A stretch of DNA of 64,000 bases from Macrostomum hystrix. Taxonomy: Eukaryota; Animalia; Platyhelminthes. The stretch's first letter is position 1. Every line of letters begins with the position of its first letter. The notes beneath the pieces are model-generated. The model did no database searches. It was not told the DNA's origin and saw only the letters and a program-made list of their open reading frames with translations. Of this stretch, positions 27,412 through 58,642 are shown one piece after another. Location of the stretch: positions 18,848,001-18,912,000 of the forward strand of contig CATNEN010000038.1 of the NCBI GenBank assembly GCA_950097015.1, written 5' to 3'. Made by a program: the position numbers and the translations under genes.

Positions 27412-30400
27412 ATGTCCTCAACTGAATCTGTAGCCGCCCAGCAGTCGGCCACCTGCACGGCGCTGACTGGGCCAACTTCGCCACCACCCGACGCTGAAAA
27501 GTTCAAAAGCGAAGCCAATACGGCCTTCAATCAGGGTCACTACGATCAGGCGATTGCTTTGTACAATAAAGCCATAGACTTGTACGACAAATCAGCCATC
27601 TATTATGCTAATAGAAGCTTCGCCTATCTGCGCACTGAATGCTTTGGCTATGCCCTGTTGGATGCTAGTCGGGCCATTGCCCTGGATCCATCCTATATTA
27701 AGGCATATTATAGGCGCGCCTCAGCTAATATGGCGCTTGGCAAATTTAAACTGGCCCTAACCGACTTTGAACAGGTGCATCGGCGAAGGCCCAGCGATTC
27801 AGATGCCAAAGCTAAGTATAGCGAGTGCAAGAAGATTGTACAGCAGAAGGCTTTTGAGAAGGCTATCGCCTATGAGGAAAAGAGAGTGAGTTTAATACCC
27901 GTTTTGCATAATATTAATAATAATAATACTTGCAAGAGGGGTGTGGGCACTGGCACATCTTTTGGTGACACCAGACTCGCAGCCAGCGAGGAGGCGACAG
28001 AGCACACAGGCACACGCTCACACAGGTGTGTATATCTGCCCTGCCATCCCCATCGTCAGGTAGTGTGCACTCTCACTGTGCCTTGGAGTTGGGCCCTCAG
28101 TGGTGAAAATGGCGTGACATGCCACCAAGCCTTCTCCCCGCGGGTGCTCCTTAAATTAAGGTGGCCTAGTCACGGTATCGACCTTGGTGCGAGAGGCAAA
28201 CGCGTTAGACCGCTCTGCTACTCACCCCCAGAGTGCCACTACTAACAGTAGGATATGCAATAAGCTGAGATGTGCCAACTTAGATATATCTGTTTCTTCC
28301 AATATTTTAGGTGAGCCCGTGCGACGAGATTAGCCAATCCCTGCAGTCGATGTCTATCGAAGACAATTACGACGGTCCAAGACTGTCAGACGATCCCGAT
28401 GGCCCCAAGGTGACGCGAGATTTCGTTACGCAACTACTGGACTATTATAGAAATTCCAAGGTGTTACATAGGCGCTACGCCTACCAGATTCTTGTTGATA
28501 TGAAGGTGAGAAGTTTGCTTACTCAGTTTTTAACCTGTCGCTGTAAATGAAATTAACAGTAGTACTACCAAGGGGGGTGACTATTTTCTGTGCTGCACCC
28601 GAACGGAGCAACGCAAGCTCACGAAACTCAAGAGCACGGGCCAACCTTTTGTTGCGCATCTTCTGAAACAATAATCAAGTCGCCAGCTCTTCGATATTTT
28701 CAACAGTTCTGTCCGAAGGTCGGATTTTTCGCATAAGCGCTAGTGTATTTCATACACCCCTATACACGAATTAGCACTGCACCCTCAGTGCGGCCTTGCC
28801 AGGCCTTCGAAATTTATCAGCATTTCACCCGAATGTGCCTGCATCATCTCCGTCTTCGGTGGTCACCTACCTTTATCTAGATGGCTTTGCTGGATCTTCA
28901 AGGGCTACAACAGGTGGAAATAGGCCACTATGAACACACTTATGAACGCAAATTTCTCCGATTTCACTGATCAAGCGTAAATATTAGGCGCAGCTCAACC
29001 ACAGGACACAATGGCCTAGTTTGTCAACCAATCAGTCACCACCGAATAGCGTTTTGGCGCTGCCAAAATAAATTTCATGGGGAATTCCCCCCCCCCCATG
29101 GTATAAAAACGGGCGGCAAAACGGCTAGGTAGTCCTACTGTTAATGCAAGCATGAAATTGATTTATCTGTAAATAAATCAATTGTTTAGTATATGAAGAC
29201 TAGCAAAACTGCACCCCCTAATTGTAACCATAATCTGTAGGCCTTCTTATCGGCCGAGGCCACACTAGTCGACATCCCGGTGCCCGAAGGCACAAAATTC
29301 ACCATCTGCGGCGATGTTCACGGGCAGTTCTTCGATCTGCTAAACATTTTCGAGCTCAACGGCCTGCCATCGGAGTCGAATCCCTATCTATTCAATGGCG
29401 ACTTTGTTGACCGCGGCAGCTTCTCGGTGGAATGCATCTTCACTCTGTTCTCATTGAAGCTACTGTATCCGAAGTCATTCTTTCTGGCCAGAGGCAATCA
29501 CGAGTCCGAGTACATGAACAAGATCTACGGCTTCGAGGGCGAAGTGAAGGCCAAGTACACGGAAAAGATGGTTAGCCTGTTTCGCGAAGTCTTCAACCTG
29601 CTGCCATTGGCTCATTTAATTGACGGCCGAATTCTTGTCATGCACGGCGGACTGTTCTCATGTGAGTAGCAGCGCATTTTGCTATTTCCCTTTTAATCCC
29701 TTATAATTTAGCCTAAAATTTCTCCCATCGATTAACTTCAGCTGACGACGTTACTCTGGATGATATTAGAAAAATCAATCGCAACATGGACATCCCGGAC
29801 TCCGGCCCAATGTCCGAACTTCTCTGGTCGGATCCGCAGGATCTGCCCGGTCGGGCGCCGTCCAAACGCGGCGTCGCAGTTCAGTTTGGCCCGGATGTTA
29901 CAGAGAGATTCTGCAAGGTCAGAGCTGTTTATTGGTTAAATTCTTACGTTTAACGTGTGAGCTACATTATAAGGTTGGGATTTTACAATCCCAGATACTA
30001 AAATATCAGTGTTTGATTCAATCCTCCTTGATCCAAAACTTAGTATTATACCCTCCTTTATCCTCTAGATTTGGATTACATTCCCTCAGATTCCACATAT
30101 TTTTATTACGCTGTCCCAGATCCCACAGCTTGGGATTCTATTCGCAAAGATCCCACAGCTTGGGATTTCATTCGCAAAGATCCCACAGCTCGGGATTCCA
30201 TTCGCAAAGATCCCACAGTTCGGGATTTCATCCTCATAGATCCCACAGCTTGGGATTTCATCCTCACAGATCCCACAGCTTGGGATTCTATCACCACAGA
30301 TCTCACAGCTTGGGATTTCATCCTCGCAGATCTCACAGCTCGGGATTTCATCCTCACAGATCCCACAGCTTGGGATTTCATCCTCACTGATCCCACAGCT

Positions 30401-37714: not shown

Positions 37715-38490
37715 GAGGAGAGGCTGATGGGAGAGTAGAGGCTGGGGGGATAGTAAAGGCTGAGGGGAGAGTAGAGGCTGGGGGAAGAGGAGAGGCTGAG
37801 GGGAGAGTAGAGGCTGGGGGGAGAGGAGAGGCTGAGGGGAGAGTAGAGGCTGAGGGGAGAGTAGAGGCTGAGGGGAGAGGAGAGGCTGGGGGGAGAGTAG
37901 AGGCTGGGGGGAGAGTAGAGGCTGAGGGGAGAGGAGAGGCTGTGGGGAGAGTAGAGGCTGAGGGGAGAGTAGAGGCTGAGTGGAGAGTAGAGGCTGGGGG
38001 GAGAGGATAGGCTGAGGGGAGAGTAGAGGCTGAGGGGAGAGTAGAGGCTGGGGGGAAAGTAGAGGCTGAGGGGAGAGGAGAGGCTGAGGGGAGAGTAGAG
38101 GCTGAGGGGAGAGTAGAGGCTGAGGGGAGAGGAGAGGCTGAGGGGAGAGTAGAGGCTGGGGGGAGAGTAGAGGCTGAGGGGAGAGTAGAGGCTGAGGGGA
38201 GAGTAGAGGCTGAGTGGAGAGTAGAGGCTGGGGGGAGAGTAGAGGCTGGGGAGAGAGTAGAGGCTGGGGGGAGAGGAGAGGCTGAGGGGAGAGTAGAGGC
38301 TGGGGGGATAGTAAAGGCTGAGGGGAGAGTAGAGGCTGGGGGGAGAGGAGAGGCTGAGGGGAGAGTAGAGGCTGAGGGGAGAGTAGAGGCTGAGGGGAGA
38401 GTAGAGGCTGGGGGGATAGTAAAGGCTGAGGGGAGAGGAGAGGCTGAGGGGAGAGTAGAGGCTGGGGGGACAGTACAGGCTGAGGGGAGA
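37715..38490. repeat. 18-bp purine-rich minisatellite (ggctgaggggagagtaga)
   Basis: Tandem copies; explains the SPQPLL ORF. Confidence 0.95.
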
Positions 38491-39069: not shown

Positions 39070-42000
39070 CTAGTTTGATTGATCAGTTCTTTGGTGTGCG
39101 CTCCGCTTCCTTCGGCCGCTGAAAGGAGAAAATGCGTTTTCGGATATTCCTTTTTTGCTGTGGTAGAAGAAATAAAATATTAGAGGAAGGGGTAGAAGGA
39201 TTGAGGGTTGGAGAAAAGGGTCTAGAAAGTTGTAGAAGGCTTGAGGAAGGGGTAGACGAATGGGAAGAGTGGAAGGATGGGAGAATGGGTAGAAGGACGT
39301 ACGAGAGAATGGAGTAGAAAGATGGCAGAAAGCGGTCAAAGGATTTTAGAAGGGGTAGAAAGATGGTAGAAGGGGTAGAAAGATGGTAGAAGGGGTAGAA
39401 AGATGGTAGAAGGGGTAGAAAGATGGTAGAAGGGGTAGAAAGATGGTAGAAGGGGTAGAAATATGGTAGAAGGGGTAGAAAGATGGTAGGATGGTAGAAA
39501 GGGCAGAATTGGTAGAAGGGGTAGAAAGATAGTAGAAAGGGTAGAAAGATGGTAGAAGTATGATTTAGATTGATGGATGTTAGAAGAGGTAGAAGGGGTA
39601 GAAGGATGATAGAAAGCGGTAGAAGGATGGTAGAATCGGTAGAAGGATGGTAGAATCGGTAGAAGGATGGTAGGAAGGGTAGAAGGGGTAGAAAGATGGT
39701 AGAAGGATGGCAGAATCGGTAGAAGGATGGCAGAACCGGTAGAAGGATGGCAGAATCGGTAGAAGGATGGCAGAATCGGTAGAAGGATGGCAGAATCGGT
39801 AGAAGGATGGCAGAATCGGTAGAAGGATGGCAGAATCGGTAGAAGGATGGCAGAATCGGTAGAAGGATGGCAGAATCGGTAGAAGGATGGTAGAATCGGT
39901 AGAAGGATGGTAGGAAGGGTAGAAGGGGTAGAAAGATGGCAGAATCGGTAGAAGGATGGCAGAATCGGTAGAAGGATGGCAGAATCGGTAGAAGGATGGT
40001 AGAATCGGTAGAAGGATGGCAGAATCGGTAGAAGGATAGCAGAATCGGTAGAAGGATGGTAGAATCGGTAGAAGGATGGCAGAATCGGTAGAAGGATGGT
40101 AGAATCGGTAGAAGGATGGCAGAATCGGTAGAAGGATAGCAGAATCGGTAGAAGGATAGCAGAATCGGTAGAAGGATGGTAGAATCGGTAGAAAGGATGG
40201 TAGAATCGGTAAAAGGATGGCAGAATCGGTAAAAGGATGGTAGGAAGGGTAGAAGGGGTAGAAAGATGATACAAATAGTAGAAGGGGGTAGAAAGGTGGT
40301 AGAAGAGTTAGAGGCATGGTAGAAAGGATAGAAGGGCCAGTGAAGGATGAGGGAAGCGAAGGATAGGGGAAGGCAGGCTCAGTTGCGAATCCCTTTCGAG
40401 CTGAATGTTGGAGAAAAAGTATATTTTTCAACTAACTAATGAAGCGACCGGGCTGGGCGACGGGGTTACACACTCAAGTTGATCGCTAACAATTATTAAT
40501 TCATGAGCCTTGGCCCAGGGCTGTAGCTTATATCGCTGTGATATCGTACATCACAGAACCAGGCTCTGAACTATAACAACGACTCTAACCGCACGGGTTG
40601 TCTGCATAATTTTTATACCCTTACGGAAATAAGAAGCAAGAGAAAGGAAATAGGAAATCTTTCTGTATAAGATTCAGCGTGATTTAGCATCGAGTCGCGG
40701 CATTTTTGAATTACTTTGAACCTGAATGCAAATCTCTAAGAATATAAGAAACAGTTGTTAAGAGAAACCATTCTAGCTGTGGAAACTTTAGCAATAATCT
40801 AGAAAATCTTGCAATAAGTCTTCTAATTTTGAAAACTTTGATAATCCAGGAATCTTCAACGATAATACAGAAATCTTGGTTGATAATCCAGGAATCTAGG
40901 ACGATAATCAAGACTTTTAGGACGATTATTAAGACTTATAGGTTGGTAGTCTAGAAATCTTGGACGATAATCTAGATATCTACTCGTAGGTTTATAATTC
41001 AGAAATCTTAGACGGAAATCTAAACCAGAAATCTAAGAAGACAATCCAGAAATCTAGGAAGACAATAAAAAACAAATCTGAAACCCACCTAGCACTCAGG
41101 TCGATGCCGTATTGTCCAGATGAAGAAGGGCTCCCCATCTTGTTGATCGCCGACAGCAGATCCGCCAGGCGGAGATCCGAGCTGAGGCGCTTTTCGGCTG
41201 GCCTGAAATGAAACGGCCTTATTAGGTATTGATATACCCACCTGCCTAGCTCCATTTCAAGCTACCTTCCTAGCTACCTTTCTAACTAATTTTATTTCTA
41301 CCATCCAATCTGTATCTAACACCCTACCCACTCATTCTGTATCTAACACCCTCCCCATTCATTCTGTATCTAACACCCTCCCTATTCATTCTGTATCTAA
41401 CACCCTCCCCATTCATTCTGTATCTAACACCCTCCCCATTCATTCCATATCTAACACCCTCCCTATTCATTCTCTAACACCCTCCCTATTCATTCTGTAT
41501 CTAACACCCTCCCCATTCATTCTGTATCTAACACCCTCCCCATTCATTCTGTATCTAACACCCTCCCCAGTCATTCCATATCTAACACCCTCACTATTCA
41601 TTCTCTAACACCCTCCCTATTCATTCTGTATCTAACACCCTCCCCATTCATTCTGTATCTAACACCCTCCCTATTCATTCTGTATCTAACACCCTCCCTA
41701 TTCATTCAGTATCTAACACTCTCCCCATTCATTCAGTATCTAACACTCTCCCCATTCATTCAGTATCTAACACCCTCCCCATTCATTCTGTATCTAACAC
41801 TCTCCCCATTCATTCAGTATCTAACACCCTCCCCATTCATTCTGTATCTAACACCCTCCCCATTCATTCCATATCTAACACCCTCCCTATTCATTCTCTA
41901 ACACCCTCCCTATTCATTCTGTATCTAACACCCTCCCCATTCATTCTGTATCTAATACCCTCCCTATTCATTCTGTATCTAACACCCTCCCCATTCACTC

Positions 42001-45000
42001 TGTATCTAACACCCTCCCCATTCACTCTGTATCTAACACCCTACCCATTCATTCTGTATCTAACACCCTCCCCATTCATTCCGTATCTTACACCCTCCCC
42101 ATTCATTTCGTATCTTACACCCTCCCCATTCATTTCGTATCTTACACCCTCCCCATTCATTCCGCATCTAACACCCTCCCCATTCATTCCGCATCTAACA
42201 CCCTCCCCATTCATTTCGTATCTTACACCCTCCCCATTCATTTCGTATCTTACACCCTCCCCATTCATTTCGTATCTAACACTCTCCCCATTCATTTCGT
42301 ATCTTACACCCTCCCCATTCATTCTGTATCTAACACCCTCCCCATTCATTCTGTATCTAACACCCTCCCCATTCATTCTGTATCTAACACCCTCCCCATT
42401 CATTCTGTATCTAACACCCTCCCAATTCATTTCGTATCTTACACCCTCCCCATTCATTCTGTATCTAACACCCTCCCCATTCATTCTGTATCTAACACCC
42501 TCCCCATTCATTCTGTATCTAACACCCTCCCCATTCATTCTGTATCTAACACCCTCCCAATTCATTTCGTATCTTACACCCTCCCCATTCATTTCGTATC
42601 TTACACCCTCCCCATTCATTTCGTATCTTACACCCTCCCCATTCATTTCGTATCTTACACCCTCCCCATTCATTTCGTATCTAACACCCTCCCCATTCAT
42701 TCCGCATCTAACACCCTCCCCATTCATTTCGTATCTTACACCCTCCCCATTCATTTCGTATCTTACACCCTCCCCATTCATTTCGTATCTAACACTCTCC
42801 CCATTCATTTCGTATCTTACACCCTCCCCATTCATTCTGTATCTAACACCCTCCCCATTCATTCTGTATCTAACACCCTCCCCATTCATTCTGTATCTAA
42901 CACCCTCCCCATTCATTCTGTATCTAACACCCTCCCAATTCATTTCGTATCTTACACCCTCCCCATTCATTTCGTATCTTACACCCTCCCCATTCATTTC
43001 GTATCTTACACCCTCCCCATTCATTTCGTATGTAACACATTTTCCCTTTAAGTTTGTCTTTATATCAATCGGTTATCGATAAAAGTGCTTCACCCAGACA
43101 ATTCGTTTGGTTTCAGACACACTGGACAGGCATGATAATAATGATCGAGAACATTAATTCAGCTAGTCTGCATGTTAATGAAACGCCAAAGCTCTCTATG
43201 ACTGATCTCTATTTCCAATTAGCTACCTTCGCTATATTCGACTAATTAAATAGTCTATAAATAATTCACACCCATTTGACGTGTCACAAAATGTCTGCAG
43301 TTGACAGTCAGCAGCATACACTGGCGCAGAAATTATTGGAGAAAAAACATAATTTTTTTCTGGAATCTTCTGTTTCTCCCAGTCCACACTTCTTGAAAGC
43401 GAGTTTGCAGAAGCAATAGTTTTAACCGCAGCCACTGCCAGCGAATAACAAGTGGCCCCAATTCAACAGTCAAGATGTGCCCTGTTACAGGTGAATGAGG
43501 TTAGTATTTTTCAGCTAGCAAACAAGCACCCTGCCAGATCCACAACTGGGATGCTTCCTCGTGTTTGACCAAAAAATTGGCGAACTGATAAGCAGGAGCT
43601 GATGGTAAAATCTTTGAGATCAATAACACAATGCCTTGTCGCTGTTTAATTAGTAAGGCCAAAAAATTGTCTGTTTCAATTCGAAGAAATAGCTGACTAC
43701 TTGTTCTTGATCAACACAACTTGTGATTCCCCTTGTCTTCCCGTTTTGTACATGTCTACTCTGCCTCATTGTATAATCTGCCTCCCTTGTCTACTCTGCC
43801 TCCCTTGTCTACTCTGCCTCCCTTGTCTACTCTGCCTCCCTTGTCTACTCTGCCTCCCTTGTCTACTCTGCCTCCCTTGTCTACTCTGCCTCCCTTGTCT
43901 ACTCTGCCTCCCTTGTCTACTCTGCCTCCCTTGTCTACTCTGCCTCCCTTGTCTACTCTGCCTCCCTTGTCTACTCTGCCTCCCTTGTCTACTCTGCCTC
44001 CCTTGTCTACACTGCCTCCCTTGTCTACTCTGCCTCCCTTGTCTACTCTGCTTCCCTTGTCTACTCTGCTTCCCTTGTCTACTCTGCCTCCCTTGTCTAC
44101 TCTGCCTCCCTTGTCTACTCTGCCTCCCTTGTCTACTCTGCCTCCCTTGTATACTCTGCCTCCCTTTTCTACTCTGCCTCCCTTGTCTACTCTGCTTCCC
44201 TTGTCTACTCTGCCTCCCTTGTCTACTCTGCCTCCCTTGTCTACTCTGCCTCCCTTGTCTACTCTGCCTCCCTTGTATACTCTGCCTCCCTTTTCTACTC
44301 TGCCTCCCTTGTCTACTCTGCCTTCCTTGTCTACTCTGCCTTCCTTGTCTACTCTGCTTCCCTTGTCTACTCTGCTTCCCTTGTCTACTCTGCCTCCCTT
44401 GTCTACTCTGCCTCCCTTGTCTACTCTGCCTCCCTTGTCTACTCTGCCTCATTGTATAATCTGCCTGCCTTGTCTACTCTGCCTCCCTTGTCTACTCTGC
44501 CTCCCTTGTCTACTCTGCTTCCCTTGTCTACTCTGCCTCCCTTGTCTACTCTGCCTCCCTTGTCTACTCTGCCTCCCTTGTCTACTCTGCCTCCCTTGTC
44601 TACTCTGCTTCCCTTGTCTACTCTGCCTCCCTTGTCTACTCTGCCTCCCTTGTCTACTCTGCCTCCCTTGTCTACTCTGCCTCCCTTGTCTACTCTGCTT
44701 CCCTTGTCTACTCTGCTTCCCTTGTCTACTCTGCCTCCCTTGTCTACTCTGCCTCCCTTGTCTACTCTGCTTCCCTTGTCTACTCTGCTTCCCTTGTCTA
44801 CTCTGCTTCCCTTGTCTACTCTGCCTCCCTTGTCTACTCTGCCTCCCTTGTCTACTCTGCTTCCCTTGTCTACTCTGCTTCCCTTGTCTACTCTGCCTCC
44901 CTTGTCTACTCTGCCTCCCTTGTCTACTCTGCTTCCCTTGTCTACTCTGCCTCCCTTGTCTACTCTGCCTCCCTTGTCTACTCTGCCTCCCTTGTCTACT

Positions 45001-45868
45001 CTGCCTCCCTTGTCTACTCTGCCTCCCTTGTCTACTCTGCCTCCCTTGTCTACTCTGCCTCATTGTATAATCTGCCTGCCTTGTCTACTCTGCCTCCCTT
45101 GTCTACTCTGCCTCCCTTGTCTACTCTGCCTCCCTTGTCTACTCTGCCTCCCTTGTCTACTCTGCCTCCCTTGTCTACTCTGCCTCCCTTGTCTACTCTG
45201 CCTCATTGTATAATCTGCCTGCCTTGTCTACTCTGCCTCCCTTGTCTACTCTGCCTCCCTTGTCTACTCTGCCTCCCTTGTCTACTCTGCCTCCCTTGTC
45301 TACTCTGCCTCCCTTGTCTACTCTGCCTCCCTTGTCTACTCTGCCTCCCTTGTCTACTCTGCCTCCCTTGTCTACTCTGCCTCCCTTGTCTACACTGCCT
45401 CCCTTGTCTACTCTGCCTCCCTTGTCTACTCTGCTTCCCTTGTCTACTCTGCTTCCCTTGTCTACTCTGCCTCCCTTGTCTACTCTGCCTCCCTTGTCTA
45501 CTCTGCCTCCCTTGTCTACTCTGCCTCCCTTGTCTACTCTGCCTCCCTTGTATACTCTGCCTCCCTTTTCTACTCTGCCTCCCTTGTCTACTCTGCTTCC
45601 CTTGTCTACTCTGCCTCCCTTGTCTACTCTGCCTCCCTTGTCTACTCTGCCTCCCTTGTCTTCTCTGCCTCCCTTGTATACTCTGCCTCCCTTGTCTACT
45701 CTGCCTCCCTTGTCCACCAAATTAAGACACTCGTTCAAAAGTTACTTACCGAATTCGCTCCGCCGATTCCGTGTCTTCCATCGGTTCATTGCGCGAGTTG
45801 CTTGGCAAGCAGCAGACCAGATTGACCAGAATCAAGGCAACGGCCACAATTGTTACGAAGAGCTTCAT
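39070..45868 (-). CDS. Neuropeptide precursor A (PTH-like/PXXXamide-like). Exons 45750-45868, 41089-41202, 39070-39118
   Basis: Spliced product MKLFVTIVAVALILVNLVCCLPSNSRNEPMEDTESAERIRPAEKR-LSSDLRLADLLSAINKMGSPSSSGQYGIDLSAS-GRRKRSAHQRTDQSN*: signal peptide, dibasic site, Gly amidation donor plus polybasic site; two phase-2 GT-AG introns. Confidence 0.8.
39345..40275. repeat. 20-bp purine-rich minisatellite (agaaggatggcagaatcggt and variants) in precursor A intron 2
   Basis: Tandem copies visible directly. Confidence 0.95.
41310..43035. repeat. 27-bp minisatellite (taacaccctccccattcattctgtatc)
   Basis: Tandem copies; the reverse-complement array lies at 46000-46525. Confidence 0.97.
43753..45718. 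repeat. 18-bp minisatellite (ctctgcctcccttgtcta) with higher-order blocks separated by cattgtataat
   Basis: Tandem copies; separators near 43767, 44450, 45061, 45204. Confidence 0.97.
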
Positions 45869-45999
45869 TAAAGCGATGTACTTGACGATGACTAAGCGAA
45901 ATTTCAGGAGATATAAATTTTGACTCCGAGATTTTGTTATCATAACATTTTTTAAATTCATAATTAAGTTTTTGAAGCAGTGGGGCAATGAAGATATGT

Positions 46000-46525
46000 T
46001 AGGTACAGAATGAATGGCGAAGGTGTTAGATACAGAATGAATGGGGAGGGTGTTAGATACAGAATGAATGGGGAGGGTGTTAGATACAGAATGAATGGGG
46101 AGGGTGTTAGATACAGAATGAATGGGGAGGGTGTTAGATACAGAATGAATGGGGAGGGTGTTAGATACAGAATGAATAGGGAGGGTGTTAGATACAGAAT
46201 GAATAGGGAGGGTGTTAGATACAGAATGAATGGGGAGGGTGTTAGATACAGAATGAATGGGGAGGGTGTTAGATACAGAATGAATGGGGAGGGTGTTAGA
46301 TAGAGAATGAATGGGGAGGGTGTTAGATACAGAATGAATGGGGAGGGTGTTAGATACAGAATGAATGGGGAGGGTGTTAGATAGAGAATGAATAGGGAGT
46401 GTGTTAGATACAGAATGAATGGGGAGGGTGTTAGATAGAGAATGAATGGGGAGGGTGTTAGATACAGAATGAATGGGGAGGGTGTTAGATACGGAATGAA
46501 TAGGGAGGGTGTTAGATATGAAATC
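46000..46525. repeat. 27-bp minisatellite, inverted relative to 41310-43035
   Basis: gatacagaatgaatggggagggtgtta tandem copies. Confidence 0.96.
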
Positions 46526-47829
46526 AATATGGAGGGTGTTTGATAAGGAATAAATATGGAGGATGTTAGGTAATCTGAGAAAATCTAAAAGGTAATTTTG
46601 TGAGACAGAAAGAATAGGAAGGGATTTTTGTGCTTATGAGGCTTAAGCCGTTGTTTTTTGGTGAATTGTTGATAGCGAGGGTGTCATATTGAACAAAGTC
46701 TGGTCCCTCCTTTATATGGTTTTTTAATGACGTTCAATCGTTTGATTTGTCATTTATTGAGATTTCCAGTCATTTGGCAAGGATAGACAAAATGCAATTA
46801 CAGGTGAGTAATTATTTTGATGCAACTCCGTATGACGTCATTTCTATTGAAGAGAAATTTAATTACTGTTTTTCCGCTTCCGGAAGAGGGAGACTTTATT
46901 CGGATTTAGCAAAAATCACCATTATCTATTGAGTCTTCAATTATAAGAGAAGTTTGAGAAGTACACTTTCGGATTTGAATGACGGTTTGCTAAGAATCGA
47001 ATTTATTAAGGACATAATTTGAATTTCGTAAAGTGGTCAGGCTACTAGACATAAATATATGCAATCAATCTAGAATCTTTAGACTTTTTTTCAGGCAACT
47101 GTCAGAATTTTTTAACAGCGGGACACTTGGTGTCTTGGAAAATTTATCAAAGGCAGATTTTCACGGAAAATGCACTAGCGAGATAGGAAGTTTTCACGTT
47201 TTTTAAGGAAGTCGCATTTGTAAGTCCGAACTTGAAAAGGAATGCAATAGAAAAAATTAATATCTGATAAAAATGTGAAAAATGTAAGTTCAGGTGTAAA
47301 TTTATAACACTAGGTCAGGATATTCTTGAGTAGCAGTCAGCGAGTCAATTAAATTATTAAAAAATGATTGTGACAAGTGCGAAAATTAGTTTTATAAAAT
47401 TATCCCACACCGGTTGGTTAATAAATGATTCAAATTGGGCTAATAGCGTAGCGAAACTCACCTCGAAATGCTCAAAAGATGCTCAAAGGTCCGAGCCTAA
47501 AATGAAACAATTTGTTGGATTTTTTGCTTCAAATCGAATTCGACTCGAGTGACTTCTTGGCTGCTCTTCGAACCAAATTTATAGGCCCTGTTGGCCGTGT
47601 CACTGTTGTCGGCTGGGGCAGCCTACTAGCCAATCGGAATTAAGGAGGCCTATTGGTTGAATTGTTCAATTAGCTATTCCGAAACCTTACATTGACATTC
47701 TATCTAACCCTTAAAATGCCCTCTTTCTAACCCCTTCTACCATTCCATCTAGCCCTCAAAATTTCATCTATCTGCTACTCCGAGTGTCATCTTTCGAGCC
47801 CTCTTAATACCTTCTTAATAGCCTCTAAT

Positions 47830-48420
47830 TACCCCTCTAACTGGCCTCCTTCTGCCCCTCTAACTGGCCTCCTTCTACCCCTCTAACTGGCCTCCTTCTA
47901 CCCCTCTAACTGGCCTCCTTCTACCCCTCTAACTGGCCTCCTTCTACCCCTCTAACTGGCCTCCTTCTACCCCTCTAACTGGCCTCCTTCTACCCCTCTA
48001 ACTGGCCTCCTTCTACCCCTCTAACTGGCCTCCTTCTACCCCTCTAACTGGCCTCCTTCTGCCCCTCTAACTGGCCTCCTTCTGCCCCTCTAACTGGCTT
48101 CCTTCTACCCCTCTAACTGGCCTCCTTCTGCCCCTCTAACTGGCCTCCTTCTGCCCCTCTAACTGGCTTCCTTCTACCCCTCTAACTGGCCTCCTTCTAC
48201 CCCTCTAACTGGCCTCCTTCTACCCCTCTAACTGGCCTCCTTCTACCCCTCTAACTGGCTTCCTTCTACCCCTCTAACTGGCTTCCTTCTACCCCTCTAA
48301 CTGGCTTCCTTCTACCCCTCTAACTGGCTTCCTTCTACCCCTCTAACAGGCCTCCTTCTACCCCTCTAACTGGCTTCCTTCTACCCCTCTAACTGGCTTC
48401 CTTCTACCCCTCTAACAGGC
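47830..48420. repeat. 23-bp minisatellite (cccctctaactggcctccttcta)
   Basis: Tandem copies visible directly. Confidence 0.96.
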
Positions 48421-48671
48421 ATTCTAATCTTTCACACCCTTCTGCTCTCATTTCTCTGAATCGCATTGGTTCTCTTTGTTGGGTCTCACTGATTGGGCGT
48501 TCTTCTCAAAGTTCTAGGTCTTTTGTCTGCCAGTTAATCTGTCCAGTACTTTTTCTCTCAATCAGAACTTTTCATTTTCTTTAGGCCTCATTTTCCACTT
48601 GCCCGGTTAAATTCTGCGGTGAAACATCCAAAGAATTCTCTCTAAGGTCGATTCCCTGGAGTCCTGCTGAG

Positions 48672-50805
48672 ACGAAATTATCTTCATTATCCACATTATC
48701 TACGATCGTATAGTATCTTTTATTATCGCATTATTGGCCGTGCCAATATAGTGACTGCGACTATACATTATTTTGTAGTCCAACCATGCTACTCTCATTC
48801 GTCGTAGTACAAGTAGTATGTTAATCAATTTTTGGTATGCGTACTCAAAACAGGTGATGATTTTTCTAGGAAAACAATTTCGAGAAAAAAATATCGTCGG
48901 TAATGACGCAGCTTTTTTCCATATTGACTTTTTATTGCTTTATTGCTTTGGTGCAATTTTATTTGACCAGATTATATTTTTATTGCTTTATGCTGAAATC
49001 GAAATTGTGCGCAAATTTTTAAGCTTTTACGTTTGCCAGGCAAACGTAATTTGCCAGTGACAAAGTACAATTTAGCGCTCATTCCAATAAAATTCTGGAT
49101 ATGAATGAAAAGAGATTGCCAGCACAAATTTTTATGTAGATTGGCTGCTATACTCAAAGAAACAATTAATCGACACTTCGGAGATTATCTACCTAACTCC
49201 GCCCACCACCACAATCCGCCAAAAACCACACTCGACCAACAACCTCACTCCGCTATACACCTCACTCTGCCAACCATCGCACTCCACTCTGGGTGCACAC
49301 CAACCCACTCCGCAAACAAACCCACTCCGCCCGCGACACCACTTCGCCAACCACCCCACTCCGCTAACCACCCTCCCCAACCACCTCGCTCCACCAATCA
49401 CTAGGCTTGCAGCCAATATTAGAGATTAATATACACCCTTTCAAAGTTTAGAGTTCAGTTCATTCGAAGGGTTCGAATAGGGTGTACAGGCGCGTTGTAG
49501 GTCCGTTTTTAAAGCTCACAGAACTTTTTAGTCAACGTCCAAGCAATTCAATCGATTTAAGATCAATTGATTTCCAATCCGTCAGTCACAGCCGGCTATA
49601 AAGTCCACCACACTGCAGCTCTCAAGCTCGACTGCCGCTGCTGCGACGTCGACGACGACCTCTGAAAATTAAAAAAGGATTCCAGTCGGTTTCTGACATA
49701 AGACAGCGGTCCTATAATGATCGATGTTTGACAAACATGGCTTCGAGATCCAGGCCGTACTGCCCGTTGCTGTCTAGGCGTGGAGCACCGACGCCGCTGA
49801 TCTGGGCGGACTGAGCTTCGCGAAAGTCCTCGAGTAGGTCGGCTATGCGATGATCCGAGCTGAGTCGCTTATGGCGGGCCAGTGGGCTGAAATGTGAGAC
49901 GGGACTGAATACCCAATGAGCAGAAATTTCTGTGGACTGGTGAGGCCGCGAAAACAATAAGTTATATGCTGTTTTGATTCCGACTAAGAATTGCTCTAAC
50001 ATAGGGCTATACATTAATGAGTTGCGGGAGGGGGCTGCAGGAGGGGGTGAGTGGCAGAGCGGTTAACGCGTCTGCCTCTCGCACTAATGTCCCTGAGCTC
50101 GATTACGCGGTGAGGCCACATTTATTTGGCGGGCTTATCGTGCAAAATCACGCCCTTAAGCGCCAACCTAAAAGGCACAGTGAGAGTGTACACTGCCTGA
50201 CGATGAGAAAGTCAGGGCAGATGTACAAACCTGTGAGAGCGTATGCCTGAGTACAGTATCTGTGTGCGTGTGTGCTCAGGAGTCAGCGAATAGGAAGAAT
50301 TGCCATCCTCGCCGGTTGCAGGTCTAGTGTCACCAAATGATGTGCCATTGCCGACAGCCCTCCTGCTTATTAAGTGGCTTTGGGCACTGGAACATCATTT
50401 GGTTACACTGGACCCTCAGCCGACGAGGAGACAATTTCGCTGACTCCTGAGCACACACTCGCAGGTGTGTACATCTGCCCTGTGAGTTTCTCATCGTCAG
50501 GTCGGTCCATGAGGGTGTAAATTGAACAAGACCCCAAAGCATTCTCCCCACGGCTGCGCCCCGAATAAATGTGTTGCCTCGCCGCGGCTAGACTTATTCA
50601 AAGCCTTCAATTAACATACCCATCGTGAGCCGAGCTTTTGGCCTGCTCTCCGGCGTCGTCGTACGGATCGCCGCATCTGGCACCGGCAGCCAGGAGAAGC
50701 AACAGACAGATCGCTACAGTCGGTTTCATAGATAACGCAGGAATGCTGACAACTGTTTTTGCACGCTTCAAAATTCAGGCTCTAGGTAAAGTCTGAAACA
50801 ATTTT
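48672..50805. repeat. Segmental duplication unit carrying precursor B; paralogous to 55963-57564 and partly to 50979-52869
   Basis: cgaaattatcttcattatccac... onward is near-identical at about 48673 and 55963. Confidence 0.92.
49622..50729 (-). CDS. Neuropeptide precursor B. Exons 50620-50729, 49737-49886, 49622-49661
   Basis: [99 protein letters not shown]; same intron phases as A. Confidence 0.82.
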
Positions 50806-51048
50806 GTCTCGCTCGCAATCACTCTCTTCATTGAAATTGCAATAGGACAAATCCGTCCGCCCCTCGGTATTCTATGGTAAAAAACCGTCTATTTATATGC
50901 ATTCAAATGGGACTTTCTTATTGAAGCCGTTCTTTCATGCTTTTCAATGGGACAAAGCCGTTCTTTAATGTAAGGATCATACAACCTTCTAAAGTTTAGA
51001 GTTCAGTTCATTCGAAGGGTTCGAATAGGGTATTCAGGTGCGTTGTAA

Positions 51049-51799
51049 TGTAGCAGACCTCTCAGCTCTCTCTCTATTTGTTTGATTTAGGATTGGTGAG
51101 CTGAGTATTAGGGGGGATGGTAGCGTAAGTTATGAGGGTGAGAATAGGTATTTTCCACGCTGTTCGGGTTATACCTAAGGTAGGTCCGTGGGGCGTATCA
51201 GGATGGATCAAAGTTGGCTGGTGAGTCCTTCGCACTGTCACTTACTTTCCTCTATGGGGTCCAGAATTAGTACAGTTTCATTAGGGGGATAAAGGCGGAG
51301 TTTTGGGACTTCAGGGGGGTATAGTATTTAAGGAGCCTTAGGTGGACTTCGGGTAGACTTTAGGTGGACTTTTAGGTGGGATTCAGGGCGGTATATTGGG
51401 ATTTCAAGGGGTCATATAATTGGGTGGTTTTGAGTGACGAAGGACGATGAAAGATCTTTTTAGGAGAGGATTGGGAAGGTATAGGGGTCCAACTGTTTAC
51501 TGCTATTAGGAAAATAAATAAGGAAGTCCGTTTATTTAATTGCGAAACAGGGAAAGAGGTAGGAGGTGGAATTGCTTACATTTCGTACAGGTTGCATCGA
51601 ATGTAGAGCAAAACGTTGAGAACGTATAAAACGTAAAGAACACATAATATTCTTCTCTGTATATATACACCAAAATTGGGTGCTTGTCATGCTTAAGTGC
51701 GCATACAACAAACAACGTGTGGTTACGACAAATAGTTAGCGCGTTAGAAAAGTGGCGGGAATTCAAAATGAGAAAACGTCACAATTTTTCACTGCCTCA
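51049..51799. mobile_element. Solo LTR (751 bp)
   Basis: TGTAGCAG...CTGCCTCA termini; 4-bp TSD gtaa (51045-48, 51800-03); empty site gcgttgtaagtccg in the paralog at about 56755. Confidence 0.85.
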
Positions 51800-51924
51800 G
51801 TAAGTCCGTTTTTAAAGCTCATAGAACTTTTTAGTCAACTTCCAAGCAATTCAATCGATTTAAGATCAATTGATTTCCAATCCGTCAGTCACAGTCGGCT
51901 ATAAAGTCCACCACGCAGCAGCTC

Positions 51925-52792
51925 TCAAGCTCGACTGTCGCTGCTGCGACGTCGACGACGACCTCTGAAAATTAAAAAATGGATTCCAGTCGGTTTCTGA
52001 CATAAGACAGCGGTCCTATAATGATCGATGTTTGACAAACATGGCTTTGAGATCGAGGCCGTACTGCCCGTTGCTGTCTAGGCGTGGAGCACCGACGCCG
52101 CCGCCTCCGATCTGGGCGGCCTCAGCTTCGCGAATGGACTCGAGTAGGTCGGCTATGCGATGATCCGTGCTGAGTCGCTTATGGCGGGCCAGTGGGCTGA
52201 AATGTGAGACGGTACTGAGTACCCAATGAGCAGAAATTTCTGTGGAATGGTGAGGCCGCGAAAACAATAAGTTATATGCTGTTTTGATTCCGACTAAGAA
52301 TTGCTCTAACATAGGGCTATACATTAATGAGTTGCGGGAGGGGGCTGCAGGAGGGGGTGAGTGGCAGAGCGGTCAACGCGTCTGCCTCTCGCACTAATGT
52401 CCCTGAGCTCGATTACGCGGTGAGGCCACATTTATTTGGCGGGCTTATCGTGCAAAATCACGCCCTTAAGCGCCAACCTAAAAGGCACAGTGAAAGTGTA
52501 CACTGCCTGACGATGAGAAAGTCAGGGCAGATGTACAAACCTGTGAGAGCGTATGCCTGAGTACAGTATCTGTGTGCGTGTGTGCTCAGGAGTCAGCGAA
52601 TAGGAAGAATTGCCATCCTCGCCGGTTGCAGGTCTAGTGTCACTAGACTTATTCAAAGCCTTCAATTAACATACCCATCGTGAGCCGAGCTTTTAGCCTG
52701 CTCTCCGGCGTCGTCGTACGGATCGCCGCATCTGGCACCGGCTGCCAGGAGAAGCAACAGACAGATCGCTACGCTCGTACAGTCGGTTTCAT
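51925..52792 (-). pseudogene. Neuropeptide precursor C, frameshifted in exon 1. Exons 52675-52792, 52041-52196, 51925-51964
   Basis: An 8-bp insertion after codon 5 gives MKPTVRA*; downstream exons remain open ([51 protein letters not shown]). Confidence 0.8.
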
Positions 52793-53325
52793 AGATAACG
52801 CAGGAATGCTGACAACTGTTTTTGCACCCTTCAAAATTCAGGCTCTAGGTAAAGTCTGAAACAATTTTGTCTCGCTCGCACTCACTCTCTTTATTGAAAT
52901 TGCAATAGGACAAATCCGTCCGCCCTCGGTATTCTATGGTAAAAAACCGTCTATTTATATGCATTCAAATAGGACTTTCTTTTTGAAGCCGTTCTTTCAT
53001 GCTTTTCAATGGGACAAAGCCGTTCTTTAATGTAAGGATCATCGTAGTGCCCGAGGTCATAGACATTGATGTCCGAAATAGCCGGTATATATTTTCATTG
53101 AGCAACGCTGTGATTCCCACCGGTTCTGTTTTGCACCATAGACATTCCACAGGGGGTTTAATGTCGTCCATAAAACCCTGCGGTATTTAATGGCGGGAAT
53201 CCCAGCGTTGCTCAGTAAAGATACAAACTTAACGTTTGAAATACAAGGATTCCCTGCGCGAATTCCCCATCTATAGACATGTTTAACTATGTTCATTAAA
53301 ACCCTTGCTCAGCGTTGTTCAATGG

Positions 53326-55180
53326 TAGATTAAGTCTATGGTTTCAGACTTGGATAATGATCACAGTCACGAGTGTGCGAAGCCACGAGTGATTGCTGAT
53401 GATTATTTACTTGTAATTATGAAGCCATTGACATAAGCGCATTATCATATAGACTAGCGTTTTCGGTTGATCATTATGTACTCGTAACGCCATTAAGCCA
53501 CGCCATTAAGTAACGCTGCAGCGTCTTCGAGCCATAGATATTGGCTCGGCAGTGAGCAGGGTCAAGGGTCTAATCGGACCATAGACAATTTTTTTTAATA
53601 CAGTTCTCTAAAAGAAAAGCTCGACCATGAAGTCTGTTAGGAAGTTAAGAACTAGAAGCAAGAAGCGAGAGAAATCGAATTAAAAGTGCCTCTTATCAAC
53701 TGGAAAAATCTACCGGTCGACAGTTTAGATGGCGTCTCGTCTACTGAACTAGATTTTCTGAGTGAACTGAGCGCCGTGAACCACAGTTCCGATGAAATTC
53801 TTGGAGATTTTATCGACTACCTGTCTAAAATCGAGACGGCTGATGAGGCCGCTGCGGTTTCTAGTGTCGAGCTTCCAGAACTATCTGATTTACCCAGTGC
53901 GATGGATGTTGTCGAACTGGAATCACTGCCGAGCACTACACGAGAACACATGTTTCTGTATGGCAAAATGTTCGTGGAGTTTTAGAAGAACCATGGTGCT
54001 GTGGATGTGAGCGTGATCAGTGACAGTCGCTTGGCCGAATTTCTAAGGTTCTTTTACTTCCGTCTAAAAAGATCTGACGGCAGTTGCTATTCGCCAGCTA
54101 CGTTGGTCTGCATTCGTGCTGGAGTGCAGAGGTACTTGACTCTCGCGCTGAAGCGTCGAACAAATATTGTTTCCAGTGACGAGTTCGCCACTGCCAACCG
54201 GATGCACTGTCAATCAGCACGAGCCAATAGAAGAAGGTGATTTACAGAAAACGGGTGCTTATTTTGACCGTTCTACAGCTGAACGGTTGCAAGATGAAGT
54301 ACTATTTACGCTGCTGTATGTCCTGGGCGAGAGAGGTCAAGAACACCTGTCAAGTCTAAGGCAAGTTGGCACGCTCCAAGAAGAAGTCGACGCTGATGAG
54401 AATCCATATCTTGCGTTGCCGCCGTTAAAGACAAAAAACCAGAGTAGCGATCCAACAAAATGCAAGGGAAATCAGAGCAAACAGAGTCGGATCTACGGCG
54501 CTCAGCGGGAGTTGATCCTGCATTATCAGAGTTTGATTAACAATTCGGGAGGACAAATTCGCTTCTCTGATACGCAAGTGCGCAGTTTCAATTGGTTGGC
54601 TGCATTCATGAAGCACGTGAGTAGTGGGTGCAACCTCTCCAAGCAGTATACGAATCACTGCATACGCGTCTCGCGTATTGCGGATCTTTTCGACAAAGGA
54701 ATGCCTATGGGTGAGATAATGGCGGTAACGGGACAACAATCTGAGTCCACTGTTCGACGTTATCTCACACGCAAGCGTGACAGAACCCTCAGGAAGGTTG
54801 CTACCGCTGTTAGTGACAATTTGGCCCCAACAACCAAGGCGACTATACGAGTGCAACCACTAGTGCAACAGTCATGCAGCAAGCTCAAGTTGACATGCGA
54901 AGTGTGCAACAGCCGATGTTTGCCAACTGCCTCTTCGATGGGTGCACGTTCAACTTCTAACAAAGAATATATAGCTCGTACTTATAAGTCTTAAATGTCG
55001 AAAATTAAATACTTTGGTATTCGTTTGCTTTGCTATATCCTCGATCTGTTTCCTGTTAAAGTTCTTGTTGCTTAAATTAATAAAAACAGTGAATTTCTCG
55101 CTCATAATCTTTGCCAATTTATCGTGACTTAACAGCTTCATTAAAAAATGCATTAAAAACGATAGTCTATATGATAATGC
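53326..55180 (+). mobile_element. Crypton-like tyrosine recombinase DNA element (degraded)
   Basis: Flanked by the 10-bp direct repeat tgttcaatgg (53316-25, 55181-90); internal inverted copies of both ends; YR ORF inside. Confidence 0.72.
53686..54994 (+). pseudogene. DUF3504/Crypton-type tyrosine recombinase with an in-frame stop (53983) and a frameshift (about 54200)
   Basis: LAEFLRFFYFRLKRSDGSCYSPATLVCIRAGVQRYL (DUF3504-like N-terminal part); LGERGQE (R), KTKNQ (K), YTNHCIR (HxxR), TGQQS (conserved H replaced by Q), VRRY (Y). Confidence 0.85.
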
Positions 55181-55789
55181 TGTTCAATGGGACAGAGCCG
55201 TTCTTTAATGCTTCTCAATGCAAAAAACATTTACTACTATCAGTAATTACTATTGACTGACTGACTGACTCACTAGTGACTAAACGACTTACTTGATACA
55301 TTTGGATTAAGCAATTGATAATCCAGTGTGCATTTTTTACTCTAACTGACTGGCTGCATGGCTGCATCGATGACGGCGGCACGAAATGTCAAATACTATT
55401 TATTATTGCATCGCCTAAATTAGATGAGCTGTTAATTCGAAACTCATTGTTTTGTTTTTTGGGATGCCTTATGTTATTATAGTTACAAGTTAAGTACTAT
55501 TGGGACTCATCATATTACTCAGCGTGATCACCGAATACCCAGGCGAGGTCGCTGCCATCCAGGCGACACCTGGTGTATCGATTGTGGCGATGCAAGAAGG
55601 CGCCGACTATGTATTGCAGGGCCCGCCAACGCAGCAGCGTGTACGGGACCTGCTGGCAGCTCAAAATATCGAGCTGCAAGTCGGGCGCATTAAGTGGTGG
55701 CGGATGGCAGGTCGGGAATCAGGATATGCCAGCGCGGCATCAGCCTCAGATTCGTCTGATTCGGATTAGATGATTAGATCCCGAAAACT

Positions 55790-55953
55790 CTAAATTCCCT
55801 AATTATAAATCCCTGCTTCAAAATCCCTAATTCCTCATCTCTAATCCCTAATTCCTAATCCCTAATCCCTAATCTCTAATCCATAATCCCTAACCCCAAA
55901 GCTCTAATCCCTAATCCCTAATCCCTAATCTCTAATCCATAATCCCTAATCCC
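55790..55953. repeat. Degenerate (CCCTAAT)n telomere-like microsatellite
   Basis: ccctaat heptamer and variants. Confidence 0.85.
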
Positions 55954-56884
55954 GTGGATACTCCGAAATTATCTTCATTATCCACATTATCTACGATCGT
56001 ATAGTATCTTTTATTATCGCATTATTGGCCGTGCCAATATAGTGACTGCGACTATAGATTATTTTGTAGTCCAACCTTGCTACTCTCTTTCGTCGTAGTA
56101 CAAGTAGTATGGTAATCAATTTTTTGGTGTGCGTACTCAAAAAAGGTGATGATTTTTCTAGGAAAACAATTTCGAGAAAAAAATTATCGTCGGTAATGAC
56201 GCAGTTTTTTCCATATAGATTTTTTTGCTTTATTGCTTTGGCGCAATTTTATTTGACCAGATTATATTTTTATTGCTTTAATGCTGAAATCGAAATTGTG
56301 CGCAAATTTTTTAAGCTTATACGTTTGCCAGGCAGGGCGCCAGTGACAAAGTACAATTTAGCGCTCATTCCAATAAAATTCTGGATATGAATGAAAAGAG
56401 ATTGCCAGCACAAATTTTTATGTAGATTGGCTGCTATACTCAAAGAAACAATTAATCGACACTTCGGAGCTTATCTACCTAACTCCGCCCACCATCCCAC
56501 TCCGCCAAAAACCACACTCGACCAACAACCTCACTCCGCTATCCACCTCACTCTGCCAACTATCGCACTCCACTCCGGGTGCACACCACCCCACTCCGCA
56601 AACTAACCCACTCCGCCACTCACTCCGACACCACCCTCCCCAACCACCTCGCTCCACCAATCACTAGGCTTGCAGCCAATATCAGAGATTAATATACAAC
56701 CTTCTAACGTTTAGAGTTCAGTTCATTCGAAGGGTTCGAATAGGGTATACAGGCGCGTTGTAAGTCCGTTTTTAAAGCTCATAGAACTTTTTAGTCAGCG
56801 TCCAAGCAATTCAATCGATTTAATATCAATTGATTTCCAATCCGTCAGTCACAGCCGGCTATAAAGTCCACCACACAGCAGCTC

Positions 56885-57487
56885 TCAAGCTCGACTGCCG
56901 CTGCTGCGACGTCGACGACGACCGCTGAAAATAAAAAAGGATTCCAGTTTGTTTCCTACATCAGACATCGGTCCTGATGATCGATGCTCGACTAACCTGG
57001 CTTTAAGATCGATGCCGTACTGCCCGTCGCTGTCTAGGCGTGGAGCACCGACGCCGCCGAAGCCGCCGCCGCCTCCGATCTGGGCGGCCTCAGCTTTGCG
57101 AATGGACTCGAGTAGGTCGGCTATGCGATGATCCGAGCTGAGTCGCTTATGGGCCAGTGGGCTGAAATGTGAGACGGGACTGAGTACCCAATGAGCAGAC
57201 ATTTCTGTGGACTGGTGAGGCCGCGATAACATCGGCCCTGTGAGTTTCTCATCGTCAGGTCGGTCCATGATGGTGTAAATTAAACAAGACCCCAAAGCAC
57301 TCTCCCCACGGCTGCGCCCCGAATAAATGTGTTGCCTCGCCGCGGCTAGACTTATTCAAAGCCTTCAATTAACATACCCATCGTGAGCCGAGCTTTTGGC
57401 CTGCTCTCCGGCGTCGTCGTACGGATCGCCGCATCTGGCACCGGCAGCCAGGAGAAGCAACAGACAGATCGCTACAGTCGGTTTCAT
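56885..57487 (-). CDS. Neuropeptide precursor D. Exons 57378-57487, 56997-57161, 56885-56924
   Basis: [104 protein letters not shown]. Confidence 0.83.
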
Positions 57488-57994
57488 AGATAACGCAGGA
57501 ATGCTGACAACTGTTTTTGCACGCTTCAAAATTCAGGCTCTAGGAAAAGTCTGAAACAATTTTGAAATCCGAAAATTCCTAAGCATTATACAGCAGAAAC
57601 AAGCAGGATATTGTACTCAGCTTTACCTTCTGCCTCAGTTGAGAAGTGCCGACTGTGACCCGAGAGTTTTTTAAAGACGAAGCGGAGAAACTCAGCAAAT
57701 TTTACACTCATTTAATAAGGATTTTCACTAGCCAATCGGAAATCATTTTAACAGAAAATGTTTCTATTGAAAGGAAATTTAAATAGGTATCAATAGCTAT
57801 CAATATTATTTTCGCATTGCTTCCTGTTGATTAAGGTTTTGTCATATGTTTTTCTCTGCGTTTAAACGAACTCGCTAATGAGCATCGATAGTAGTTTCCA
57901 AGGTTTTGCCCTGGTTAATTGTCTGCATTAGCTGACAGAACCACACTCCTGAACTGATGGATTAAGACAAGAACTGCTATACGAGCTACTAACA

Positions 57995-58330
57995 TGCCTC
58001 CCTTGCCTACTCTGCCTCCTTAGTCTACTCTGCCTCCTTAGTCTACTCTGCCTCCTTAGTCTACTCTGCCTCCTTAGTCTACTCTGCCTCCTTAGTCTAC
58101 TCTGCCTCCTTAGTCTACTCTGCCTCCTTAGTCTACTCTGCCTCCTTAGTCTACTCTGCCTCCTTAGTCTACTCTACATTTCTTGTCTACTCTGCCTCCC
58201 TTGTCTACTCTACATTTCTTGTCTACTCTGCCTCCCTTGTCTACTCTACATTTCTTGTCTACTCTGCCTCCATTGTCTACTCTGCCTCCCTGTCTACTCT
58301 GCCTCCCTTGTCTAATCTGCCTTCCTTGTA
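57995..58330. repeat. 18-bp minisatellite of the same family as 43753-45718
   Basis: ctctgcctccttagtcta / ctctgcctcccttgtcta tandem copies. Confidence 0.93.
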
Positions 58331-58642
58331 TTCTCTACCTTCTTTACCTACTCAGCTTTTTTGTCTACTCTGCTGCCTTGTCTATCCAACCTGCAGTCGT
58401 TTAGTTATCCCATTAACGGAAGTGTTCACAGTTTTAGCCTAGAATCATTAGCTTAATAGACACAGGCTCAGTTCCTACTTGTAGTTATTACATTTGAAAT
58501 TCGCAACTACAGATATAATAGTTCCATAACTGAATGAGATTTTTAAAGCAAAATCCGGAGCACTTCTAGAGCAATGACTACCATTAGATTTCTGATTGAT
58601 TTCTGACTATTAAACAATACGTAAGTAGCCTTTGGCTGTAGA

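Follow-up and report, generated by a model that had tools for sequence, protein, structure and literature searches.

The window analysed here, 64,000 nucleotides of the flatworm Macrostomum hystrix (contig CATNEN010000038.1, positions 18,848,001 to 18,912,000), carries a tandem array of four genes, named A to D, on its minus strand between positions 39070 and 57487. Judged from sequence, these genes very probably encode secreted, spliced precursors, each of a single long amidated peptide. Their motifs and exon layout suggest, with fair likelihood, that they are flatworm representatives of the iPTH/PXXXamide (QSGamide) group known from protostomes.

Four peptide precursor genes in tandem

The array extends from the final base of the gene A stop codon to the ATG of gene D, and its members share one three-exon plan. 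Exon 1 provides the ATG, a hydrophobic leader followed by a short, acidic spacer, and the first two bases of a codon. Exon 2 contributes the base that completes this codon, a few residues, the dibasic site K-R and then the peptide, and likewise breaks off after the second base of a codon. This last codon is finished by exon 3 as Ser (A and D) or Ile (B and C), after which come Gly-RRKR or Gly-RRRRR, a tail of 6-10 residues and the stop. All eight introns are of the GT..AG type and in phase 2, with lengths from 72 to 4547 nt. The original prediction had described precisely this: four minus-strand genes of three exons, each with two phase-2 introns. Its coordinates and junctions proved exact and all four genes are in place; the first exon of gene C is broken as assembled.

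Exons joined by a local script yield precursors of 93 (A), 99 (B) and 104 (D) amino acids, with open frames throughout. The predicted mature peptides have 33, 43 and 49 residues, respectively, and gene C would yield one of 45; the local joining thus reproduces the four lengths of mature amide forecast earlier. In A, B and D the hydrophobic core of the N-terminus reaches about 3.6 on the Kyte-Doolittle scale, and K-R directly precedes L-S-S-D. The first exon of gene A has, in addition, a weak tblastn match to the N-terminus of Macrostomum lignano P0012.

Each mature peptide starts with the block L-S-[ST]-D-[HL]-R-[IL]-A-D-[LIM]-L and finishes with G-Q-Y-G-[IL]-[DN]-L-x-A-[SIN], predicted to be amidated. 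Between the two lies a Gly/Ser/Ala linker of variable length. Conserved ends joined by a variable linker had been noticed from the start, and are found in all four genes of the cluster.

We infer cleavage, amidation and neuronal expression of these products, with the processing modelled on the standard peptide-hormone pathway. The signal peptide would be taken off, and a prohormone convertase would cut after the K-R that precedes L-S-S-D and at the RRKR or RRRRR run. Once the basic residues were trimmed, the exposed Gly would become the C-terminal amide; this Gly comes into frame only through splicing of the last exon. The yield would be one amide of 33-49 residues per gene. An amidating enzyme is present in the genome: a PHM exon at C38:18814748-18815134 matches PAM at 1.8e-31, against 1.6e-5 for dopamine beta-hydroxylase. 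It lies outside the window, about 33 kb ahead of its start and 72 kb from the peptide genes; the proximity is probably coincidental.

AlphaFold places a low-confidence helix across the N-terminal block (mean pLDDT 60). In the space of a protein language model (ESM Atlas), the M. lignano orthologues fall near the precursors of DH31, PDF, NPF and gastrin, which is a generic signal only; one unnamed arthropod cluster came up with both queries.

Transcripts of genes C and D

Transcript contigs of four runs were compared with positions 51850-57600 only, that is with genes C and D. In run X10, a contig of 1084 nt joins 57552-57378, 57161-56997 and 56924-56209 without a single mismatch and hence represents spliced gene D. 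It skips two introns of 216 and 72 nt, both GT..AG on the minus strand, and includes the 56996/56925 junction that the original prediction had singled out for verification. The shorter intron is in frame and free of stop codons, so the list of open reading frames (ORFs) reads through it; in the transcript it is removed. Downstream, the contig continues into a 3' untranslated region of about 0.7 kb, to position 56209. This region (56209-56924) is 96-98% identical to the one downstream of gene B.

Run X6, labelled as coming from another organism, contains a 480-nt contig in which exon 2 of gene C (52196-52041, 0 mismatches) is flanked by sequence of exons 1 and 3. It confirms the use of the weak donor AT|GTTTGT common to B and C. 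Because the copies of exon 1 and of exon 3 are nearly identical, the contig is silent on which of them were joined; a reading of it as gene D exon 1 spliced to gene C exon 2 was considered and dropped as undecidable, contigs being unable to phase such copies. The junctions of genes A and B, as predicted, are supported by sequence only.

Compared with its B and D counterparts, exon 1 of gene C holds 8 extra nucleotides (GTACGAGC) after codon 4, within 52770-52790. As assembled, its frame meets a stop after 7 codons, at codon 8. None of the contigs of the four runs covers this exon, and the bins 52618-52809 have a depth of 0. Probably, gene C has either become a pseudogene recently or carries a defect of the allele or of the assembly. 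Beside it, inside intron 1 of gene C, the segment at about 52426-52617 is a very high-copy repeat, with a summed contig depth of about 7500 in X10. The first intron is similarly long in gene B (733 nt), where a matching part presumably lies, and short in gene D (216 nt).

A family of six genes under purifying selection

A profile built from the four exon 2 translations was run against the species' own 220-Mb assembly. It recovered genes A-D and two more, at 281004-281105 and 286534-286629 of contig C6, both on the minus strand and 5.5 kb apart. Both possess a separate exon for the signal peptide, share the two phase-2 introns of the array and end in S-G-RRKR. The family therefore comprises six genes in the M. 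hystrix genome, not four. The array A-D is indeed a tandem expansion, as had been proposed, and with two members on another contig the expansion is not purely local. In all six genes a phase-2 intron sits one base ahead of the amidation Gly codon, and in all six Gly-RRKR or Gly-RRRRR is obtained after splicing.

In public protein libraries, the relatives amount to three M. lignano clusters, named 'hypothetical' or 'secreted protein': one is of the B/C/D type, one of the gene A type and one corresponds to a C6 gene. These proteins too end in Gly and basic residues (G-RRKR, G-RKKR and G-RRR), which makes the amidation signal common to 9 of the 9 sequences compared, six genes and three M. lignano proteins. 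The cluster had been called hidden: it is missed by the ORF track, while its M. lignano orthologues were already among predicted proteins. It exemplifies how amidation sites made only by splicing escape ORF-based annotation.

Over the two conserved blocks, older paralogs differ at a proportion of synonymous sites (pS) of 0.55-0.86, which is nearly saturated, against 0.02-0.14 for non-synonymous sites (pN). The conserved end blocks are under purifying selection, and the pattern described here is not due to chance. Genes B, C and D are recent copies (pS 0.06-0.09), with mosaic flanks of 96-99% identity.

Resemblance to iPTH/PXXXamide peptides

Xie et al. (2020) recognise iPTHs by a signal peptide and a dibasic site, by the S-D of x-S-D-Q-R-[LIVM]-A-E-[LI], by a Pro at -4 that they term 'mildly conserved' and by a strictly conserved Gly-basic end (PMC7224569); at the C-terminus, the consensus of published members reads [YFH]-G-x-[LIVF]-[DN]-P-x-x-x-G-basic (PMC7224569 S1 Table). 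The precursors of genes A, B and D, of 93-104 amino acids, have the hydrophobic N-terminus, the dibasic site and a single peptide. The S-D motif appears as S-[ST]-D-[HL]-R-[IL]-A-D-[LIM] in the six genes and the three M. lignano proteins, with Asp as the deviation from Glu; the match was judged by eye and by pattern. For comparison, Locusta iPTH has S-D-H-R-V-A-E-L (PMC7224569). The D-L-R-L-A-D-L-L-S-A-I-N of gene A may be set, motif to motif, beside D-V-R-L-A-D-M-L-A-S-I-N of a Phoronis transcript (PMC7224569 S1 Table).

Pro at -4 is replaced: all members of the family have Leu in this position, with Asp or Asn at -5. The same position also varies among published iPTHs, with D-L in gene 2 of Centruroides and of Mesobuthus, N-L in Clitarchus, and D-V and D-F tabulated as well, and Xie et al. 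do not regard Pro as a strict hallmark (PMC7224569). Counted from the amide, the two groups share one register, with D/N at -5 and P/L at -4. Gly followed by a basic cleavage signal closes the peptide in the six genes and in the M. lignano proteins.

The gene structure offers a further likeness. The last exon opens with the Gly used for amidation, and spiralian alternative transcripts are identical from that Gly onward (PMC7224569; oyster gene, PMC8398477), the spiralian boundary being deduced from transcripts and from the description of the oyster gene. The QSGamides of spiralians were equated with iPTH/PXXXamide by Thiel et al. 2021 (PMC8557429).

Scanning the whole genome for S-D-x-R-[LIVMF]-A-[DE]-[LIMF] turned up no further gene in which the motif is preceded by a dibasic site and followed by an amidation signal. 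Genome patterns and a six-frame regular expression over the window were also used to look for another, canonical iPTH gene or for overlooked alternative exons; these gave only the family itself, S-D-S-R-L-A-E-F in a mobile element and chance matches in long ORFs, and the candidate was rejected.

Candidate receptors

Several loci in the assembly have a hormone-receptor domain (HRM) adjoining 7tm_2 exons; at several of them, two HRM matches are found a few kb apart. For two HRM exons, the best solved relatives are PTH1R and PTH2R. At C25:3362307-3362513 it is PTH1R that scores best (4.5e-14, against 1e-9 for the next family), and at C38:11728631-11728807 the PTH receptors (7e-10, against 1.6e-7). 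The peptide genes thus co-occur in one genome with PTHR-like class B1 receptors, represented by two loci.

The other HRM loci are ambiguous or calcitonin-like; the exon at C25:5042993 is ambiguous between CLR and PTH1R, and the one at C1:24369260 has no match at E<=1e-5. Exons for the third transmembrane helix discriminated poorly among receptor families. Most 7tm_2 matches carry the GPS motif and were set aside as adhesion G-protein-coupled receptors (GPCRs). An orphan PTHR-like receptor has been reported in Schistosoma by Zamanian et al. 2011 (PMC3261222).

We infer a pairing of peptides and receptors in Macrostomum. The peptides would act on the PTH-receptor-like class B1 GPCRs of the same genome. 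By analogy with the remaining ligands of class B1, they would bind the extracellular domain of the receptor through the C-terminal block and activate its membrane core through the N-terminus.

Weighing the assignment

Membership in the iPTH group seems likely to us; it is based on short motifs, their positions, an exon boundary and the presence of receptors. Several observations weigh against it. We queried with the exon 2 region of the gene D read-through ORF, with the four-exon profile (1.8 billion representatives) and with a nine-sequence profile; searches of 5.8 and 1.8 billion proteins returned only Macrostomum proteins and low-complexity (Gly/Ala-rich) noise. An accepted iPTH member was reached neither at E<=10 in a word-indexed search nor at E<=0.001 in a full HMMER scan of 1.8 billion proteins. 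Pfam gave no match for the family, no relative of it was found in other flatworms, and no sequence search links it to any iPTH, PXXXamide or QSGamide protein. Peptides so short rarely reach significance in such searches. As to the motifs, Asp replaces the near-invariant Glu of A-E-L, Leu replaces Pro, there is one residue fewer between Y-G and the hydrophobic position, and the match was assessed after the fact. The classification of the receptors comes from single exons of 59-69 amino acids. The proposal of divergent iPTH members with Leu for Pro is therefore borne out by motifs, register, exon layout and the precedent for Leu, and lacks a link by search tools; the similarity to iPTH in profile or sequence searches, named earlier as a check, did not emerge from the protein libraries.

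The same evidence can be read differently. The genes may encode amidated hormones restricted to Macrostomum, without iPTH descent and with a receptor of any class, whose likeness to iPTH in the motifs is due to convergence or chance, as might arise among generic amphipathic-helix ligands. The restriction of homologues to M. lignano, the silence of Pfam and the two signature residues that depart from iPTH (E to D, P to L) all agree with this, as do the nearest language-model clusters, which mix DH31, PDF, NPF and gastrin with nothing specific; many lineage-specific prohormones are known in flatworms. It would, however, leave to coincidence two motifs that sit correctly with respect to the sites of cleavage and amidation and keep the same register, each deviating residue having a published precedent, and a terminal-exon boundary at Gly in common with spiralian genes. 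It would also leave the PTHR-like receptors of the genome without a ligand, no other iPTH-like gene having been found genome-wide. We regard such an independent origin as rather unlikely.

A non-hormonal role, as secreted gland, seminal-fluid, adhesive or defensive peptides whose dibasic and Gly-basic sites serve merely for maturation, appears improbable. Tandem duplication and a variable low-complexity linker are seen in some secretory products, and Macrostomum has many fast-evolving secreted reproductive proteins. Against this stand the strong conservation of both ends at saturated synonymous divergence, the single peptide per precursor with the length of a class B ligand, the amidation signal kept in every sequence compared, and the hormone precursors that are the language-model neighbours. 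We give hardly any credence to a mostly decaying array in which only D still functions, the rest being pseudogenes or duplicates created by the assembly. Such decay would account for the frameshift and stop in gene C exon 1, for the lack of X10 contigs over gene C exon 2 (in a comparison limited to C and D) and for the small differences among B, C and D. In genes A, B and D, nonetheless, the frames and the processing sites are intact and the splice sites canonical; an exon 2 of the C type is spliced in run X6, and gene A has an orthologue type of its own in M. lignano.

Relation to known peptide systems

The closest parallel to the Macrostomum family is with the iPTH/PXXXamide peptides of protostomes, such as Sepia PXXXamide and Tribolium iPTH (PMC7224569). 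In both, the precursor is small and contains, besides the signal peptide and the dibasic site, a single peptide of about 30-45 residues. Both peptides start with x-S-D-x-R-[LIVM]-A-[ED]-[LIM] and end with an aromatic residue and G, then [DN]-[P/L]-x-x-x-Gly-basic, the amide being predicted in Macrostomum. Receptor genes occur in the same genome, and some lineages show multi-gene expansions. The notion that iPTH is usually a single-copy gene does not stand: Limulus has 7 genes, a spider 3, and scorpions, a springtail, Sepia, Lottia and Crassostrea 2 each (PMC7224569 S1 Table). Macrostomum differs by Asp in place of Glu, His or Leu in place of Gln, Leu at -4 (rare, but known from scorpions and a stick insect), a spacing after Y-G that is shorter by one residue, a linker rich in Gly that can reach 20 residues and no significant database similarity.

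In the QSGamide genes of annelids, molluscs, brachiopods and phoronids (PMC8557429, PMC8398477), as in Macrostomum, the exon with the dibasic site and the peptide is separate from a last exon starting at Gly. A QSGamide-type peptide of Phoronis has R-L-A-D-M-L-A-S-I-N and G-L-N-L-x-x-x-G, near gene A and an M. lignano member. A QSGamide gene, however, combines one shared first exon and one shared last exon with peptide exons that are mutually exclusive, whereas Macrostomum has separate genes with their own signal-peptide and terminal exons; its peptides also lack the two Cys that those of QSGamide type have. With the vertebrate PTH, PTHrP and TIP39 the family would share, if the assignment holds, the presumed receptor clade, a linear helical ligand of class B type and a similar length. 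There is no sequence similarity between them, and vertebrate PTH is not amidated. Insect iPTH itself is under 12% identical to human PTH (PMC7224569).

Invertebrate PTH-like ligands are already an established idea. The iPTH/PTHR system was de-orphanised only in 2020, in a beetle (PMC7224569). The supplements of Xie et al. contain no flatworm (PMC7224569), and our literature search found no paper tying Platyhelminthes to iPTH. The Macrostomum family probably provides the first flatworm iPTH-type peptides. To our knowledge, the pairing of iPTH with PTHR in spiralians has so far been assumed, not shown. We see about an even chance that these peptides supply the ligands still missing for the PTH-receptor-like orphan GPCRs of flatworms. 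If so, PTH-type signalling persisted in Platyhelminthes, and in Macrostomum the ancestral spiralian state of one gene with alternative exons would have been 'unpacked' into six genes, next to several PTHR-like loci, in a small ligand-receptor radiation. RNA interference and transgenesis are available in M. lignano; with a ligand family in a genus tractable in the laboratory, a PTH-type system would become directly testable in Platyhelminthes. The family would also serve as a template to find a more diverged ligand in parasitic flatworms, where class B GPCRs are drug-target candidates.

Features of the region

Table 1 Exons of the peptide genes, as observed or predicted, and other features of the window (positions are those of the window).
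Feature	Position	Strand	Remarks
Gene A exon 1: ATG, signal peptide, spacer	45750..45868	-	Ends CG|GTAAGT, phase 2; Kyte-Doolittle 3.6; frame check
Gene A exon 2: E-K-R and 32 of 33 peptide residues	41089..41202	-	Acceptor tttcag|G, donor AG|GTGGGT; genome profile match E=3.4e-14
Gene A exon 3: completes Ser, Gly-RRKR, 10-residue tail, stop	39070..39118	-	Junction of 1970-nt intron predicted from sequence
Gene B exon 1: ATG, signal peptide, spacer	50620..50729	-	GG|GTATGT, phase 2
Gene B exon 2: H-K-R and 42 of 43 peptide residues	49737..49886	-	Donor AT|GTTTGT; profile match E=4.6e-30
Gene B exon 3: completes Ile, Gly-RRRRR, 6-residue tail, stop	49622..49661	-	Donor and acceptor type as in gene C
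Gene C exon 1, disrupted	52675..52792	-	8-nt insertion; alignment with B and D copies, translation
Gene C exon 2: H-K-R and 44 of 45 peptide residues	52041..52196	-	X6 contig without mismatch, spliced on either side
Gene C exon 3: completes Ile, Gly-RRRRR, tail, stop	51925..51964	-	Sequence reading
Gene D exon 1, coding part	57378..57487	-	X10 contig covers 57378-57552, 0 mismatches
Gene D exon 2: H-K-R and 48 of 49 peptide residues	56997..57161	-	Donor AG|GTTAGT; X10 joints 57161/57378 and 56924/56997
Gene D exon 3, coding part: completes Ser, Gly-RRRRR, tail, stop	56885..56924	-	X10 contig continues to 56209
Tyrosine-recombinase (DIRS-like) mobile element, distinct from the peptide genes, inserted between C and D	53316..55190	+	ORF 54167-54994
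Minisatellites	38000-38490, 39272-40263, 41301-43038, 43753-45714, 45997-46569, 47830-48420, 57995-58384		Periods 18, 20/40, 27, 18, 27, 23 and 18 nt, respectively

The DIRS-like element has transcribed copies of about 95% identity in runs X1 and X3, and one of its motifs recurs genome-wide on many contigs. Elsewhere in the window, a motif resembling the C-terminal block (28171-28203) was rejected, since it lies in the intron read-through of a TPR gene. The stretch 27412-28245, on the plus strand, holds an exon for the TPR N-terminus of a protein phosphatase 5-like protein and reads into the intron; it is unrelated to the peptide genes. The long introns of gene A and the spacers are filled with dense minisatellites. 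The two 27-nt arrays, at 45997-46569 and 41301-43038, are reverse complements of each other and flank the first exon and intron of gene A.

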